The notes beneath the pieces were generated by a model. The model was given only the letters and a program-made list of their open reading frames with translations. It had not been told where the DNA came from and did no database searches. The translations under genes were made by a program, and so were the position numbers. A stretch of DNA of 63,040 nt, counting the filler, from Reticulomyxa filosa (lineage: Eukaryota > Protista > Foraminifera): NCBI GenBank assembly GCA_000512085.1. It is 18 parts of 18 records of this genome, joined end to end, with 100 filler letters (N's around TTAATTAATTAA, not from the genome) between each part and the next. Parts side by side here need not be neighbours in the genome. Positions count along the whole stretch, not along the records: positions 45,664 to 46,951 come from ASPP01011805.1; 17 more parts are not named here. One strand, given 5' to 3'. Numbering within the stretch: position 1 is the first letter of the stretch; the number at the start of each line of letters is the position of its first letter. Below are positions 11 through 49,800 of the stretch, piece after piece.

Positions 11-1155
11 ATGGAAGAAAATAAACAAAATGAGAGCTTCAAAATGTTTGGTTTGGATCGCGAGCGTTGACAAAAAAGTGTTGGTAACCCTAACAGTAGT
101 GCAAAAGAAGGCAGTGCCAGCACTGGAGAAAAAGGAAATATTGCTGATAGCAAAAACGGGTTCTGTAAAGACCTTGGCATTTGTATTACCAATGATTGAG
201 AACGCATTGCGAAGTCTGGAAATAGAGCAAAACAACAGTGGGAAGCCAAGTTATGAGAATGGAGTAGTGAAGCGAAGCAGAATAAAATCGATAATATTAG
301 TACCAACGCGAGAGTTGGTGAATCAAGGGCTGAAGTTGTGAATGACATGATATTTTTTTGCAACCACATATTGTCATGTTATTCTTTGATCGGAATCGAT
401 AACAAATGCTTGGATATGGAAAAGCCTCGATTACTGGAGCAGCCACAAATCATTGTATGCACCACTGCAAGGTGATTTTTTTTATTTTTAGACACAGACA
501 TCAATGTGTACAAAATCAACAAACAAAATACCTTAAGCAAATACAAAACAACAGCAATAACAAACAGATTGGTCAGCCATTTGAAAGCAGGGAATCTGAG
601 TTTGACAGGCATTGAAATAGTTGCAATTGACGAAGCCGATCTGGTAATGGCTCATGACTTTGAATTGGACATTCGTGAAATCACTTTGAACATGTCTTCG
701 TCCCGAAAACATCAAATATTCGTTTGCAGCACCACATTGAATCCTCACACCACTGATCTTCAAAAGCACTTTTTGATGCATCATCCAACTGTTATTCAAA
801 TCGATCAAGTTTCTTTTGCAAAAATAAATAATTAACACACACAAAAAGGGTGGAAAAAGTTATACGTATTATAAACACTTATATCTTTACAAGCAAATGT
901 AATAACTTAAACAACGATCCATAATAGACCGGATTTTATGAAATTTAATTGAGTGATTACTACCTCGAAGTATATGATGCCAATTATCAAAGGCAAAAGT
1001 ATTATGTTTCTTCAAAGTATTGATTTGTGTTATCATTTGAAATTATTTTTGGAAAGGTTTCCAGTCCCTACTGCTGTTTTAAACCCTAATTTACCTTACA
1101 ATTCCATACAATAAGTTCTTGACAAATTTAACCGTTGTTTATTCAAATATGCTGT
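11..1155 (+). pseudogene. DEAD-box RNA helicase DBP9/DDX56-like pseudogene
   Basis: Motifs are spread over several frames: SFKMFGLD, VQKKAVP, AKTGSVKT (Walker A with G>V), ILVPTRELVNQ, IDEADLV, and KGKSIMFLQSIDLCYHLKLFLERFPVPTAVLNPNLPYNS, which resembles DDX56/Dbp9 domain 2. Frameshifts and in-frame stops are present. Confidence 0.8.
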
Positions 1156-1210
1156 AAGCTATTTTGTATTTTGTTATTGTAATTCAATGAAAAAAATAAG
1201 TAAAATAATA

Positions 1211-1959
1211 CAGTTGCGACAAAAAAAAATTAGCCAACCCTAAAATATAAACTTGTGTTTCTAACGAAAATTTTAGTAAGAAATTGTGATTATTTTTTTT
1301 GGTTTACTGGATATACTTTTACACTTTTATAAGTAGTTTGTAAAAACAATAAACAAAAATTTAGAATAGTTTTTGGAAGAAAAAAATTTTCAAAAATTGT
1401 AAGTTAGTAGTTTTCTTGTTGGACTTGCTTTAGTTGCGGTCACAATTTTCCATCTAAACTTTTTTTTTTCAACATTCCAAAAGTTGGTTGTTTTTATTGT
1501 TATTCTTTGGCTTCTAATCATGACTCACAAGCTGTCTGGAATACAACAAGCAATTTTATTTGAAAGAATACTTATGTGAATATCGTATCGTGATGCTGGC
1601 CAGCAATTTGGAATGAATCGTCAACATTGGAATGATTACACTCAAAAAATGCTCCGGATATCCTAAAACGTGGACTAATAGAGATGCTAGGCTTGCGATA
1701 CACTTAATTTACTCTAGAGATGCACAAACAGCTGTAGATTTACAGCAACTACTCGCACGAACATATAAAAGAGCGTTCTCCTTGAGCAATGTGAAGAACA
1801 TTTTAAAATCAAGCATCTTCTTGTAAATAATTTTGTAAAAGCAAATACATTCTGACACTTACATCAAGGTGATTCAATCATTTTTGAAAATTTTTTTCTT
1901 CCAAAAACTATTCTAAATTTTTGTTTATTGTTTTTACAAACTACTTATAAAAGTGTAAA
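1211..1959 (+). mobile_element. Tc1/mariner-like internally deleted DNA transposon (family A), truncated by the contig end
   Basis: Candidate left end TA|CAGTTGCGACAAAA at 1209-1224. A perfect inverted repeat of about 80 bp lies at 1318-1397 vs 1880-1959. Internal ORF 1632-1826 (SGYPKTWTNRDARLAIHLI...TAVDLQQLL...FSLSNVKNIL) resembles a Tc1/Tc3 N-terminal HTH. Confidence 0.75.
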
Positions 1960-2059
1960 NNNNNNNNNNNNNNNNNNNNNNNNNNNNNNNNNNNNNNNNN
2001 NNNTTAATTAATTAANNNNNNNNNNNNNNNNNNNNNNNNNNNNNNNNNNNNNNNNNNNN
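1960..2059. other. Artificial contig spacer (N44-TTAATTAATTAA-N44), first of 17
   Basis: Identical 100-nt spacers start at 1960, 3647, 5260, 7965, 10998, 13280, 16227, 17901, 19577, 22811, 33536, 45564, 46952, 51576, 56391, 60162 and 61941. The 12-mer puts stops in all six frames. Confidence 0.98.
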
Positions 2060-2092
2060 TCCCCCCCCCCTTTCCCAGTGTTTCTGTTTACT

Positions 2093-2321
2093 TGATCCAA
2101 TAAGTCATCGACATTGTCTTCTGATTCTATCTGCTCGTCTTTTGAATTCACTTTCTGTTCATTTGCTATGTTCATTTTTGTTTGTTTGACTAACTTATTG
2201 GTAACACCTACACGGACAAACAATTTATTTGTGGAATACCAAGTAAAGGCTTTGTGTCAGTATTTCGATTTGGTCTTTGCAATGTAACATTCTCAGGTTG
2301 AGAGTTGCAACAATTACCCAT
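2093..2321 (-). CDS. N-terminus of a putative dually acylated (MGNCC) protein, 3' partial
   Basis: ATG at 2321 gives MGNCCNSQPENVTLQRPNRNTDTKPLL. A 32-nt GT-AG intron (2239-2208) restores the frame into GVTNKLVKQTK...DDLLDQ. Confidence 0.65.
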
Positions 2322-2786
2322 TGGCAAATAATTGTGAGTCAGCAAAAATGTGAGAATTTTACTAAATTATAATAACGACGCGTTTTTTCTCGTTTAAAAA
2401 CCTGTTTCAGCTTAAAAATACAATTTTCTTTTAGCGATTTATTTCACTTGGGAGACGAGCAAAAAAGTGTTTTGGACATCTAATTGTGCAGTGTAGTAGA
2501 AAGCAGTTTAAAAGTTTTTTTTGGCTTGTAAAGACAGTGGGTGGCAGAAAAACTCAGCGATAAATAATTCGCAATATCAAAGCATTTCAGCTCTATTGTT
2601 GGATGAGCAAAAGCGTAGGTGAACTGGAAACTAACCAGCAGGTAACTAAACCAAGCATTGACGTTTTGCGACTCTGACCGTCTCAAAAGTAGAGGGAGAA
2701 GAATATATTGGGAAGGGATGCAGTGGTCAGCTTCTTCTGTGCAAACAAATTTTATTGTTATCAATGCAAACACAAAAAAAAAAAAA

Positions 2787-3600
2787 AAAACAAAATTTGG
2801 ATTGAAACCATGGAAGGACGTTTTGGAAGAGAGTTCCACGACGGTGGCTCATGCCAGTGTGACCAATCACATGACAACTCCAAATAGGCGAACATTTGAA
2901 AGAGTTGGGTATTTACATCTTTTTTTTTTTTTTTTTTTTCTCGGTGACCAAATCAACAAAACATCTGTATACGTTGGGGAAAAAAAAAAAGACCTCAGAC
3001 TTGAACAGCTTGATATCGGAGACAGAGACATCATTTGGGCAGCTTACAGTCAACACGGACGAGCCTCACAAATCCAAGAGTGACACTGACTTCACTGTCA
3101 CGACAGATACATTTGAATCAGAAAAAAGAGTAGTTCTTGATGTTTATTGTTTGATACATTATCTGTGTTTGTAACAATATACACACATATAATAATTAAA
3201 AAAATAGATTGATATTCGCCATGCTGTGCAAGTTATTTATATATACAATATATATATATATATATAAATATACATATATATATGTATATATGTAAAATTT
3301 GGTTGAACTTTGTCGGGGTTAACTTGTTCCAGATGAAAAATTTGAAAGTCTTGTACGATATTGTAATGGAGGAAATCAGAGATGACAACGATGTGGAGTA
3401 CTTACAAGACATTTTTAATGAGTGTGAGAAAAATGGATGGAGAGAGGAAGACTACACTGAATTGATTGTTCGATTCAAACCGAATCCGGAACGTGACACC
3501 ATTAGACGTATCATTGCCCGCCGTGACTACCAACCACTTTTTGCGCTTGTCGATACTGCTTTCGATACTTGCGGTGCAAAATGGATTACAATGCCTCAAG
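2787..3600 (+). CDS. Hypothetical multi-exon protein, partial
   Basis: Coding-like exons (WKDVLEESS..., TSDLNSLISETE..., MKNLKVLYDIVMEEIRDD...WITMPQ) are separated by GT-AG introns containing T/A or (TA)n runs. Confidence 0.55.
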
Positions 3601-3746
3601 TTCTTTGTTTCAGTTTTTATAACTCGTTTTCACAAAAACAACTTTTNNNNNNNNNNNNNNNNNNNNNNNNNNNNNNNNNNNNNNNNNNNNTTAATTAATT
3701 AANNNNNNNNNNNNNNNNNNNNNNNNNNNNNNNNNNNNNNNNNNNN

Positions 3747-3784
<38 letters not shown>

Positions 3785-3794
3785 GAAAAATTAG

Positions 3795-5239
3795 TGGCGG
3801 GTTTTTCTGAGACAGCACAATATAAATCATCAACGATTCGAAAACAATCGTTTGCGTATTTGAAAATTGTGTTGGAGCGATATGTGGAGGGCAGAAGGTT
3901 GTCCATTCGTGTGAAAAATAACAATAACAACAATGACAACGACAATGACAATGATGGCAACAATGTGGCCAATGGCGATCACAGCAAAAACAACAGCAAT
4001 GGCAATAACGTATTGCAAAGTGAAGCAAATAGCAGACCTACTTTGGAAGATAAGAAAAGTGATAAGAGTGTAAAATCAGTACAAAACGAAGTGGAGGAAG
4101 GAGAGGAAGAAAAGAGTGGCCTTAATTTTGTTAATAACACAAACAAAGAGACTTTGGACTTGATCATCGACACCGTCAAAATCGGTTTGAAAGACAATGA
4201 AAAAATGGTCCGGACAGAAGCCATGGAATGTGTGCATTTATTCACCAAATTCGACAAACATCGCTCCGATATGCTCATTACCAGTATTCCTCCACAATTT
4301 CGAAAAACGTATTTCCAAAAATATGGAATCGCCACTCCTGCTTCTTCAACTGCGGGTTAGATATTATCATACTTTCATTTTCTTGTTTATTATTATTATT
4401 ATTATTATTATTATTGTTATTGTTAGAAAGAGAAATAACATACACAACACCAATATTAATGCAAAAAACACAGAGGTGAAAAGAAGTCAACGCAGTAGCA
4501 TGGACAAACAAGTGCAAGTAGCAACGCCCGAACTGACGAACAAAAACAGTCGATCGGCGAGCACAAACGCGAAAGACAAAATCGAAACGAAAACAAAAGA
4601 TACAACAAAACTCAAAGCCAAAGACAAATCGGGGAAGAAAAAGACACCAAAGAAATTGTCGTCTCGACGAAACAGAGACAAAGATAAAGATAATGAAAAG
4701 GATAAAGATAAAGATAAAGATGAAGAAAATGATAAAGAAAAAGACAAAGATGCGGATAAAGACAAGGGGAGCAAAACCAAAGACAAAAGAAAAGCAGGCA
4801 AAACCCCAACATCCGACAAAGCAAAGAAGAAAACAGAGCGAAGCAGCAGTGAGATTGTTTCAAAGCGCGTTGATCCCAAGACTCCAAATAAATCTACTAC
4901 TACTCGAGGTATTTGGTTTGTTTCTTTTTAAATCCAATTTGGACCCAATTCAATTCATTTGACTTGTTTTGTTTGATGGACAATCAAAGACCAACTCAAA
5001 AGAAGGAGTGAGATCGTGAAATCGTCCAATACCGCGACAAATGAAAGCGCGGCAAAAGCACAAAGCAAAGGTAAACTAAAGCGCAGTTCAGTTGATCAAA
5101 GTGTTCGAAGCACTAGCAAAAGGGCCAGCGAGACCAGTGCAGCAAACCAGAGCCGATCTGTTGCTTCTGGCAACAGTAGCAACTCCTCCATTCAAGAAAG
5201 CAAATCTTCTCAAGGATTTTTATCCAAGGCCTTGCAAAT
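3795..5239 (+). CDS. CLASP/TOG-like HEAT-repeat protein with basic S/K-rich tail, partial
   Basis: Contains KSSTIRKQSFAYLKIVLE and LDLIIDTVKIGLKDNEKMVRTEAMECVHLF...DMLITSIPPQFRK, a pattern matching the last HEAT repeats of CLASP_N. K/D/S-rich low-complexity exons follow. Confidence 0.6.
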
Positions 5240-45563: not shown

Positions 45564-46362
45564 NNNNNNNNNNNNNNNNNNNNNNNNNNNNNNNNNNNNN
45601 NNNNNNNTTAATTAATTAANNNNNNNNNNNNNNNNNNNNNNNNNNNNNNNNNNNNNNNNNNNNTTTTTTTTTTTTTAATTCAGTCGCATCCCTATCGTGC
45701 TCTTCTTCTACCTTCGCCAATGAATATAGTCAATTTTCAACAACGACTCGCACATGATAATTATCGGTTAATTGGATCCAATCACGATAGCGCAGCCAGT
45801 TTCAATTGTATCTTATTTTGTTTTGTTTTTGTGTTTATTATTTTATTTATCAAACAAAAATAAATGTACTTTTTTTTTTTTGACATATCTGTTTTAGACA
45901 AAGGAACGATGGATATAGATGCAGTAAAAAAATTATTGATAATGTTTAGCATTACGACTCTAAACAATTTTTAATACTGTTCCTGTTGTTGGCGTTTTTG
46001 GTATTTTGAGTCGTTTTTGTATCAGATCAAAATTATACTCAAACATTTTTTCAATTTTCAAAAAATTTTTTAAATAAAATATAATTTTAAATAAATTTTT
46101 TATTTAATATTTGCCAGATTAATCTTGAAATTTTTGTTTGAAAAGTTCTTTGATTTATTGCAAAATATAACATTAAACTTAATCAAAATAATTGAATATT
46201 ATTCTTAGGCAAAGCATATATCAATAAAGGAGAACACGACAAAGCAATAAAAATTGTTTCAATTCAAAATTATCGAAAGATGCAAGTGTTCAAGAGAACA
46301 ATAGTTTTTTTTTTACTTCTTCCCCCTTTTTAAATTAAAGATTGCAACATTTTGAATTAAAG

Positions 46363-46887
46363 ATGAGTCAGGAAAGCAAAGAAGCAGGCCAGACATTATG
46401 GCGTTGTAATGTGTGCTTGCTGTATAATCTTGTGGAAGCGAGGCAGTGCCAAGCATGTTTTACCAGGCGTTCCCCGAACGCGCTAACGAAGACACTTGAG
46501 CGACCAATAAAAACGTGGCGTCCAGCAGGCAGTAAGAAGACATTGTGTTCGAGTATCGACGATACATATTACACGGACGACATGGTCAACTTCAATGATG
46601 TGTCCAAATACTTGTACCAGTTGATGCAGGAGCGAATAATAATTTTGGATGGGGCAATGGGAACGACGATCCAAAAGCATCGTTTGACAGAGGAGCAATT
46701 TCGTGGACAACGCTTTCAAGCGCATCACAGGCCTTTGAAAGGAAACAATGATTTGTTGTGTTTGACGCAGCCGCAGATCATTGAGGACATTTACTTCAAC
46801 TATTTGAAAAGTGGAAGTGATATTATCGAGACTAACACTTTCAATGCTAATGCCATCTCGTTGTCTGATTACGATACGGCTGGTTTG
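46363..46887 (+). CDS. MTR: Cobalamin-dependent methionine synthase (Hcy-binding domain start) with an N-terminal RanBP2-type zinc finger, 3' partial
   Basis: ERIIILDGAMGTTIQ...FRGQRF...LKGNNDLLCLTQP...GSDIIETNTFNA...DY, preceded in the same open frame by WRCNVCLLYNLVEARQCQAC. Confidence 0.93.
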
Positions 46888-49800
46888 GTATGTTTCTTTT
46901 TTATTTGAAATTTTTTTTTTTTTTTTTTTTTTTTGAAAAAAAAAAAAAAAANNNNNNNNNNNNNNNNNNNNNNNNNNNNNNNNNNNNNNNNNNNNTTAAT
47001 TAATTAANNNNNNNNNNNNNNNNNNNNNNNNNNNNNNNNNNNNNNNNNNNNTTCTGCCATTGACGTGTAGAAACAGAAAATTTATCTTTTTTGAGAGATC
47101 AATGATTGAAAAATATCAAAATCAGCAAATAAGCAATTTTTCCTCATCCCCATGCATTGATCAGCTGTATGGACAATAACTTTTTGACTTAATCAATAAT
47201 TATTCCATTACCTAATTTGAATCCTTGCACTCATTTTGTCTAGTGCATACATTTGATGAGAATAATCAAAATATACCTTGCTTTTAGCGTTTTCTGTCAC
47301 TTACTAGGCTCCCATGTAAACTTATTCATGTAGGAGAAAAAAATAATCTAAAAGTTTATAGCAATATTGTTTTCGTTGGAAAATGTAAATGTAATGTAAG
47401 TCAACAAATTAACAAAATTACTAATATTGTTATGTTTGATAACTCTTTGTTCTGTAAATTTTTTTGCTACTTGTATTAATAACAATTAAATAATGCTGGT
47501 GAAAATTACCACCTGCAAAATTCAAAAGCTTCAGTATGAATATCCATGCAATATGAAAGAATGCAAAAGAATTTTTAAGTCAAAGTTGATGAAAGTTTTG
47601 AAAAATAATCAGTGTTATGTTGCCAAAATAAACAAAATAAATGCATTTTTTATTAACAAAAGAAAATTTCAGTATCAAAACGAATTAATTTTTGTGAGGA
47701 CCGTTTTATTTACTTTCATAATAAGAGTAGGATCAATTGATTTATCTTTGCTAATACTACAAAGTTATTATATTTCTTTTTTGTACAAAGAAAACATGTT
47801 ACAACTGTAAATTCTGTATTTTTTTTTAGAGTTGCGAATTCACGAGCGGTTAAAGAAAATTATCTTCAACTTTTCTAGTCCTTGATTAAATTCATCGTAA
47901 AAAAGAAATAAACTATTGGCCTGCGAAATTATTATTTTTAATCCTTTAAAGAAAGGCAAGTGTAAAAAATAATACACTCTATGACAAGAATTTGTCTAGT
48001 TACATGAGTTTACAGTAGAAAAAATTTGTCCACTCGTGTCTAAGTTTTTTTATTATAAAAAAATTCTTGGTAGGTTTTATGCAATTAATTCTTCCAACAA
48101 AACTTGAAAAATTAATTGATTTTGAATAAAAAAAATTCTTTAGAATAAAAAATCATTATTTTGATTAAAAAAGAAAAAAGGGTATTAAATTTTTTCGTTT
48201 GAAATAACTGTGTATGTCTCGCTATCTGCTATTAAATGATAAAAGCTACAGAGAAAGTGTCACTACTAAAAAGTTGATGTAATTTAATTACACCTGAAGT
48301 AGGCAACGAAAAAGATAAACAATGACTGCACAAAAATATTAAAAAACAAACTTTGCTGATCTTACTAAGTATAATACGAAAGTTTAAAAAAGATGTGTTG
48401 ATATCTGTATTTGTGGACAAAAAAAAAATTTGGACTTTTTTCTTTAAGATGTTTCTTTTTTACTGAAATTTATACACTTAATCTGGAAAATATAAGGCAA
48501 TGATACAATTATCACTCCATTTGGTGCAGGCAATTACCAAGTTGAAACATCAAAGTTCATTATATATGCAAATATTGTGATCGGTACATCAAGTAATCAC
48601 ATAAAATATTAAAAAACAAGATTTAATTTGATTATTTAATATTTTTAGAAACTGTCAAAGCAATGTTTATTTTGTTTCATTGCAAATAGTGGTTGATAAT
48701 GTGTAGATTATGGAAAAAAAACTCTCAATAAATTTCATAATTACTGATTTTTGATCGGTATTACCTTTTTTATAGCCACAAGTATTAATTCTAGTTACGA
48801 AATATTGCATTGTAGATCAGTTACTGTTGCATCATAAAATAAAAATGATTTCTTAAATAAAAAAAAATGCTTAAAGTGTAATACAAAAGTAAGAAGGTTT
48901 CTTTGTGAGAAAAGGAGCTTAAAATTCCTTTAAATCTGTCAATAATTAGTATGATATAATAAAAGAAATAACAAATATTTTGATATAATATATTCAATAT
49001 TTTTAGCAAAAAAAAAATCCTAAAGTATAATATTTTGTCAACTCTTTGTTGGTAGCAACTATTAATTGATGAAGGCAATGACAAAAAACTAAAATGTTAT
49101 CAAGCCAATACCATCAAGGCAAATAGAAATCATTTGAAAAAGGAAAAGAAATTTTTTTTTTGTTCTTATTTAAATAAATTGATGCTGTGATTGCAATAAA
49201 CAATTTATTTTATAAAAGCTTTGTTTATTATTTGGTACTAATTAATTTCAATCAATAGCATATTTTTTTTTAAATTACAATTTTAATGATTTCTTGAAAA
49301 ACAATATAAAGCATATAATCAATTCTAAAACATAATGCATATCTAAAATTAAGTATATTCAAAGTAATTTTGATAATAAGCCAATTGATTAAACAAAATA
49401 ATTTGTTTGATTTTGGCATTATTGTTGTCATCATTTCAGTTCACAGCTTTATTGGCAGCATACATTCTTCCATTGCCACTCCTTTTAAAAAAAACAAAAT
49501 ATTTGGTAAATTTTGAATATTAAGATGATTAGATTCACAGAAATATGTAGAAGCTGTATTTAATGAAAAATGGCAAGAAAGATGAAAGATATAATACAGG
49601 ACAACAATTAACTACTAATTCTTTACTATAATTTGATAGTATCTTACTTTATGTAAAGAAATGAGAAAATTATCTGCATTAGATATTCGTATTCATAAAG
49701 ATGCTTTAATTGCACAAAAGCAATACAATTATTAAAATAATCAACATTTAATTCAATTGATGCAAAAAGAAGATATCCAGCATCAGTAAATACAAATATA

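Follow-up and report, generated by a model that had tools for sequence, protein, structure and literature searches.

A RanBP2-type zinc finger in frame with the homocysteine-binding domain of a protist methionine synthase: a candidate docking module in Reticulomyxa filosa

Cobalamin-dependent methionine synthase (MetH) carries out the B12-dependent step that joins the folate and methionine/SAM cycles, and to our knowledge its domains otherwise follow a very constant order in organisms ranging from bacteria to animals. Canonical members of the family, including the human enzyme (9SSP/4CCZ) and Escherichia coli MetH, share the start of the homocysteine-binding (Hcy) barrel with the protein described here, from which they differ in that the latter possesses 73 additional N-terminal residues, a zinc finger among them. 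The finger is of the RanBP2 type, a fold in which two beta-hairpins, orthogonal to each other, surround one Zn. The signature of this family has been defined as W-x-C-x(2,4)-C-x3-N-x6-C-x2-C (PMC12383448, PMC7154859), and enzymes of several other kinds also carry such fingers as appendages (PMC7154859, PMC11372445). A terminal adaptor finger of approximately 30 residues followed by a flexible linker, an arrangement resembling the one proposed here, occurs in plant HDA15 and ARI ligases (PMC7154859) as well as in CAPN15, HOIP and TRABID (PMC11372445). Whereas these proteins act on other proteins or on chromatin, MetH is a metabolic enzyme, and among the enzymes of one-carbon or amino-acid metabolism we found no other that bears a RanBP2 finger. 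Among fingers of solved structure, those of the nucleoporins Nup153 and Nup358 bind switch I/II of Ran through a flat hydrophobic surface with a preference for the GDP form, aided by a Phe or Leu in an N-terminal extension of about ten residues that plugs a pocket of Ran, and do not bind RNA (10.1101/2021.10.26.465790).

The window analysed, i.e. the whole stretch of R. filosa DNA of 63,040 nucleotides, includes at positions 45664-46951 a contig of 1288 bases which is AT-rich, eukaryotic, and bounded at both edges by homopolymer runs. The fusion considered here is based on one gene in this one short contig, with the following features:

46336-46338, plus strand: in-frame TAA, 24 nt 5' of the first ATG, closing the frame (sequence and ORF list)
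46363-46365, plus strand: first in-frame ATG, context AAG ATG A, with A at -3 (sequence)
46363-46887, plus strand: first visible coding exon of the cobalamin-dependent methionine synthase (MetH) gene, 525 nt, 175 codons, phase 0
46399-46458, plus strand: core of the RanBP2-type C4 zinc finger, W13-C32 (exact family signature)
46459-46581, plus strand: linker joining finger and MetH, residues 33-73 (about 41), basic at first and acidic further on
46582-46584, plus strand: in-frame ATG, Met74, context GAC ATG G, candidate alternative start at the canonical MetH start position
46594-46887, plus strand: residues 78-175, N-terminal portion of the MetH homocysteine-binding (S-methyltransferase) barrel (Pfam, PDB, NCBIfam)
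46888-46893, plus strand: splice donor GTATGT, then T-rich intron sequence to the contig edge (sequence; contig fits end at 46888)

Translation of positions 46363-46887 on the plus strand yielded 175 codons without a stop. Since the TAA at 46336-46338 shuts the frame upstream, the ATG at 46363 is the first of this frame, and the exon ends at GTATGT, a textbook splice donor motif. The finger, the linker and the start of the Hcy domain are joined in a single open genomic frame of coding-like composition; the preliminary description had reported such an in-frame succession of finger, linker and MetH, and its coordinates, its uninterrupted frame and its finger signature were all reproduced in the present analysis.

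A number of further observations concern the flanks of the contig. Its first bases form a T run (45664-45677), and its end (46907-46951) consists of approximately 29 T followed by 15 A, homopolymer runs which are probably the cause of the assembly break. Between 45664 and 45800 the GC content is 0.37-0.40, compared with 0.1-0.3 elsewhere upstream, and a 47-codon ORF starts there (45720-45863, plus strand) that could represent either the tail of an adjoining gene or a 5' non-coding exon. The use of 45720-45807 as an upstream coding exon was rejected upon manual reading, joining it to either AG before the MetH ATG having led to a stop. Also identified was a short out-of-frame ORF beginning at the ATG at 46280 (46280-46333), which enters a long pyrimidine tract followed by an AG at 46339-46340; this region may correspond to a uORF within the leader or to the 3' splice site of an intron in the leader. 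An Rfam search of the contig returned a chance-level match only, and no part of the contig was flagged as resembling human sequence.

The enzyme portion of the frame was assigned from three sources. In Pfam, residues 93-172 matched the Hcy S-methyltransferase family (PF02574) with 71.2 bits against a cut-off of 22 (E 1.7e-19), and a PDB search aligned residues 86-171 with human methionine synthase (MTR; 9ssp/4ccz) at E about 1e-28 and about 60% identity. Among NCBIfam models, NF007024 (metH) scored 123 bits and a second metH equivalog 108 bits, with non-MetH Hcy methyltransferases reaching at most 53 bits in the same comparison; positions 6-101 of the NCBIfam MetH model correspond to residues 78-173, and Met74 coincides with the start of canonical MetH proteins. 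Together, the Pfam, PDB and NCBIfam matches identify residues 78-175 as the start of the Hcy barrel of a cobalamin-dependent MetH. The exon encodes approximately the first 100 residues of the Hcy domain. The zinc-binding Cys triad of this domain and the pterin-binding, B12-binding and AdoMet-activation domains would be encoded by later exons, which fall beyond the contig edge at 46951.

When 1.84 billion representatives were searched by phmmer with the 175-residue sequence (6104 matches, E up to 0.001), the nearest MetH sequences were found to belong to three AT-rich eukaryotic TARA Oceans scaffolds (P0002, P0003 and P0005, the last two and the first of these lying on scaffolds L001, L002 and L003, respectively) and to Aureococcus anophagefferens (KAH8083471.1; P0001). 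Their Hcy domains are 53-61% identical to that of the query, and all four possess 50-90 residues ahead of this domain. These extensions are acidic or of low complexity, include no cysteine motif, and do not align to that of the query. The occurrence of unrelated extensions among related proteins indicates that the N-terminus of protist MetH is variable, and the statement of the preliminary description that bacterial and animal MetH begin essentially at the Hcy domain does not extend to all protist MetHs. The nearest full-length relative found, with a glutamate-rich N-terminal extension and no finger, is that of L001 (TARA scaffold_24418), a eukaryotic scaffold of 25% GC on which a complete MetH (155-4347) is laid out as two ORFs of 256 and 1106 aa; these are approximately 100 bases apart, and presumably a single intron lies between them.

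Both domains of the R. filosa protein belong to well-known families, and their combination was found nowhere else in the databases searched. No four-cysteine (C..C..C..C) motif was present in the first 200 residues of the best 150 of the 6104 phmmer matches. Word searches with the whole exon gave 120 listed matches, all of them with PF02574 only and none fused, and those with residues 1-85 and 1-60 came back blank, with no close copy of the finger. A metagenome scan, which yielded 80 loci, also revealed no finger, the three apparent matches extending to residue 12-18 being found to cross stops in bacterial DNA, and no usable match was obtained from the ESM Atlas. Similarly, none of the six frames of the three TARA scaffolds described above, one of which includes 962 bases upstream, encodes a finger. 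In the literature searched, we found no work linking methionine synthase with a RanBP2-type zinc finger, and none linking Reticulomyxa with RanBP2. The statement that no example of this fusion had been described is upheld across these protein, metagenome and literature searches, with match lists ranked by similarity to MetH and a word search blind to full-length proteins for a query of 175 residues; because of this ranking, distant independent fusions may exist. Since no finger-bearing orthologue was found, conservation cannot support a function for the finger.

Assignment of the N-terminal residues to the RanBP2 family follows from their signature and from structural relatives. Residues 13-32 read W-R-C-N-V-C-L-L-Y-N-L-V-E-A-R-Q-C-Q-A-C, in which W13, C15, C18, N22, C29 and C32 form the exact pattern W-x-C-x2-C-x3-N-x6-C-x2-C, a pattern for which approximately 1e-8 to 5e-7 chance matches are expected per protein of 175 aa; a basic residue four positions past the last Cys also matches the extended consensus. 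In a PDB search with residues 1-50, the eight-finger RanBP2/Nup358 array was matched at E 4.2e-15 and two-finger chains of Nup153 at 1.9e-8 and 1.6e-6, with single fingers at about 1e-3. Of the two Pfam families proposed as a check in the preliminary description, PF02574 exceeded its cut-off as given above, whereas PF00641 matched residues 13-34 with 16.9 bits (E 0.0038), under its gathering cut-off of 27; this family is described by a short model, of whose flanking G-D and basic residues the finger has only some. Also to be set against the finger reading is the AlphaFold2 model of residues 1-60, which is helical (mean pLDDT 63.5) and lacks a zinc ribbon; generated from the single sequence without an alignment, it is not informative on the fold. 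Low pLDDT was also obtained for the linker in single-sequence AlphaFold2 modelling, and these approximately 40 residues are probably disordered. The linker gave no family match in the Pfam search and does not align to the extensions of related MetHs. The structure search also brought up chain 00 of PDB 9hcj, a protein of 3566 residues named 'RanBP2-type zinc finger' that comprises at least six near-identical fingers, which match the query finger weakly (E 1.4e-5 summed).

Composition bears on whether the finger is coding. GC content rises from 0.09-0.30 upstream to 0.44-0.53 across the exon, reaching 0.50-0.53 over finger and linker, and GC3 is 0.51 in 46363-46581 and 0.54 in the MetH part compared with 0.21 upstream, the composition being even throughout 46384-46743. 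A 73-codon frame of such composition would be open by chance with P about 0.016, and each of the remaining five frames of 46363-46581 is interrupted by one to four stops. Furthermore, three out-of-frame ATGs (46398, 46409 and 46455) lie between the two in-frame ATGs, such that a transcript containing the finger would be translated poorly from Met74. The perfect motif, the open frame, the coding-like GC and GC3 and the out-of-frame ATGs together make a never-translated leader unlikely, and we conclude that the finger is probably a real coding part of the gene.

An alternative that we consider unlikely to be correct is that the finger lies outside the working enzyme, transcription or translation beginning either directly at the ATG at 46582 or a little way before it to give a canonical MetH. 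The finger stretch would in that case be part of a leader or of a minor alternative isoform, or else a piece of exon captured recently and now being lost. Met74 aligns with the canonical MetH start in a strong context (G at -3 and +4), and it is also where the automatic gene call on this contig begins (P0151, 102 aa), a call made by a prokaryote-style gene finder that counts as evidence neither way. Such a start would also agree with the lack of a finger among the relatives found, and with contigs from public runs that map to 46672-46888 only, i.e. to the MetH part of the exon. Conversely, a decaying or untranslated stretch would not be expected to retain a perfect motif, an open frame and coding-like composition as far as 46363, and a leader reaching this position would contain four upstream ATGs. 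The public contigs derive from two runs, taken as RNA by guess, which contain a small share of the R. filosa contig; two of them fit up to 46888 and then diverge, consistent with a splice junction at 46887/46888, and the third covers 46672-46880. Being from a close relative and 95-98% identical, they provide independent support for the MetH exon and its donor.

Taking the finger as a coding part of MetH, we examined its likely partner from the residues that distinguish subclasses of the family. Positions 13, 14 and 25 of fingers of this family (Leu/Val-Ala in the Ran type) reportedly decide between Ran and ubiquitin. In the R. filosa finger, the specificity positions are occupied by Leu19-Leu20 after the second Cys and by Ala31 inside the second CxxC, giving C-L-L-Y-N ... 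C-Q-A-C where the fingers of Nup153 and Nup358 have C-L-L-x-N or C-L-V-x-N together with C-x-A-C. The first finger of Nup153, W-Q-C-D-T-C-L-L-Q-N-K-V-...-C-I-A-C, has in common with the query the Trp, the four Cys, the Leu pair, the Asn, the Val and the Ala. Overall, Nup153/Nup358 fingers (PDB 7MO1, 3GJ7) share the same C4 signature and x2 spacing and are about 50% identical over the 20-residue core, and the best PDB matches were mostly Ran(GDP)-bound Nup153/Nup358 chains (3GJ3-3GJ8, 7MO1-7MO5 and 7MNP-7MNV). The preliminary description had treated the finger as being of unassigned type, a view which must be revised given that the Ran(GDP) fingers of Nup153/Nup358 are closest to it among those of solved structure, and similarity suggests that it groups with them. 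From the Leu-Leu/Ala positions and these relatives, the likeliest partner would be Ran or some other protein that docks on the same hydrophobic face. We put it at about an even chance that this is a protein-docking finger, and regard Ran itself as a possible, if doubtful, partner. Known Ran fingers form tandem arrays (four to eight, in animal nuclear-pore proteins), whereas the present finger is single, N-terminal, and found on a metabolic enzyme of a protist. Also, twelve residues precede Trp13, and where Nup153 finger 1 has its Leu the query has Lys, such that the N-terminal extension does not keep its hydrophobic residue at the aligned position, and Leu12 adjoins the Trp.

Binding of the MetH finger to ubiquitin or single-stranded RNA, by which the methionine cycle would be coupled to ubiquitin signalling or to mRNA, appears quite improbable; the preliminary description had suggested such a coupling, along with links to Zn status or localisation. 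Fingers of the RNA class are reported to carry an aromatic residue after the Asn and a pair of arginines contacting GGU; here Asn22 is followed by L-V-E-A-R-Q, lacking both the aromatic residue and the arginine pair, as had been pointed out for ZRANB2 in the preliminary description. Both activities are known in the fold family (PMC12383448, PMC7154859), and the NZF fingers of RYBP/YAF2 were among the weaker PDB matches (E about 0.003-0.009), ranking below those of the nucleoporins. The defining features of ubiquitin-binding NZF fingers are, however, a Thr-Phe/Tyr pair following the second Cys and, within the second CxxC, a hydrophobic residue (PMC11372445). At these positions the query has Leu19-Leu20 and Ala31, the lack of Thr-Phe having been noted previously and confirmed here, and no finger of ZRANB2, FUS, EWS, RBM5, Npl4 or TAB2 appeared among PDB matches with E up to 10. 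That the fusion is an artefact, either a chimeric contig joining a fragment of a finger to a MetH exon or a dead gene copy, seems scarcely credible: the contig is short and edged by the kind of homopolymer run at which assemblies break, and the independent contigs (46672-46888) do not span the junction of finger and MetH, but a random join would be in frame in one case of three and would in addition require 41 stop-free linker codons, the composition is smooth over 46384-46743 with no frameshifts or stops, and the MetH exon and donor are backed by contigs from another data set.

On balance, and with moderate confidence, we interpret the region as the 5' coding exon of a protist MetH gene whose lineage-specific N-terminal extension gained one RanBP2-type finger, acting as a docking module. 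Ribosomes scanning from a point 5' of 46363 would encounter the first ATG, with its A at -3, and produce a finger-MetH protein, which would be the main product of the gene. In keeping with the adaptor fingers of other enzymes, the finger may stand apart from catalysis and, being small and flexibly tethered, could serve in docking, thereby recruiting or localising MetH. Its partner would be a protein bound through the Leu-Leu/Ala face, for which Ran(GDP) would be the best single candidate. A more specific version of this proposal, in which a Ran(GDP)-type nucleoporin finger was transplanted onto MetH and tethers the regeneration of methionine and SAM to the nuclear periphery or to the Ran system, seems to us a long shot. 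If true, no metabolic enzyme would have been seen with a Ran-type finger before, and one-carbon metabolism would be physically and directly linked with nucleocytoplasmic transport.

With a docking finger at its N-terminus, MetH would be one of the rare core enzymes of one-carbon metabolism to have acquired an address or a partner, and the finger could serve as a pull-down handle for MetH partners in R. filosa. The N-terminus of protist MetH emerges as a variable region able to gain additional sequence. Were the partner to be Ran, one might suspect that SAM regeneration is organised locally, in the vicinity of nuclei.
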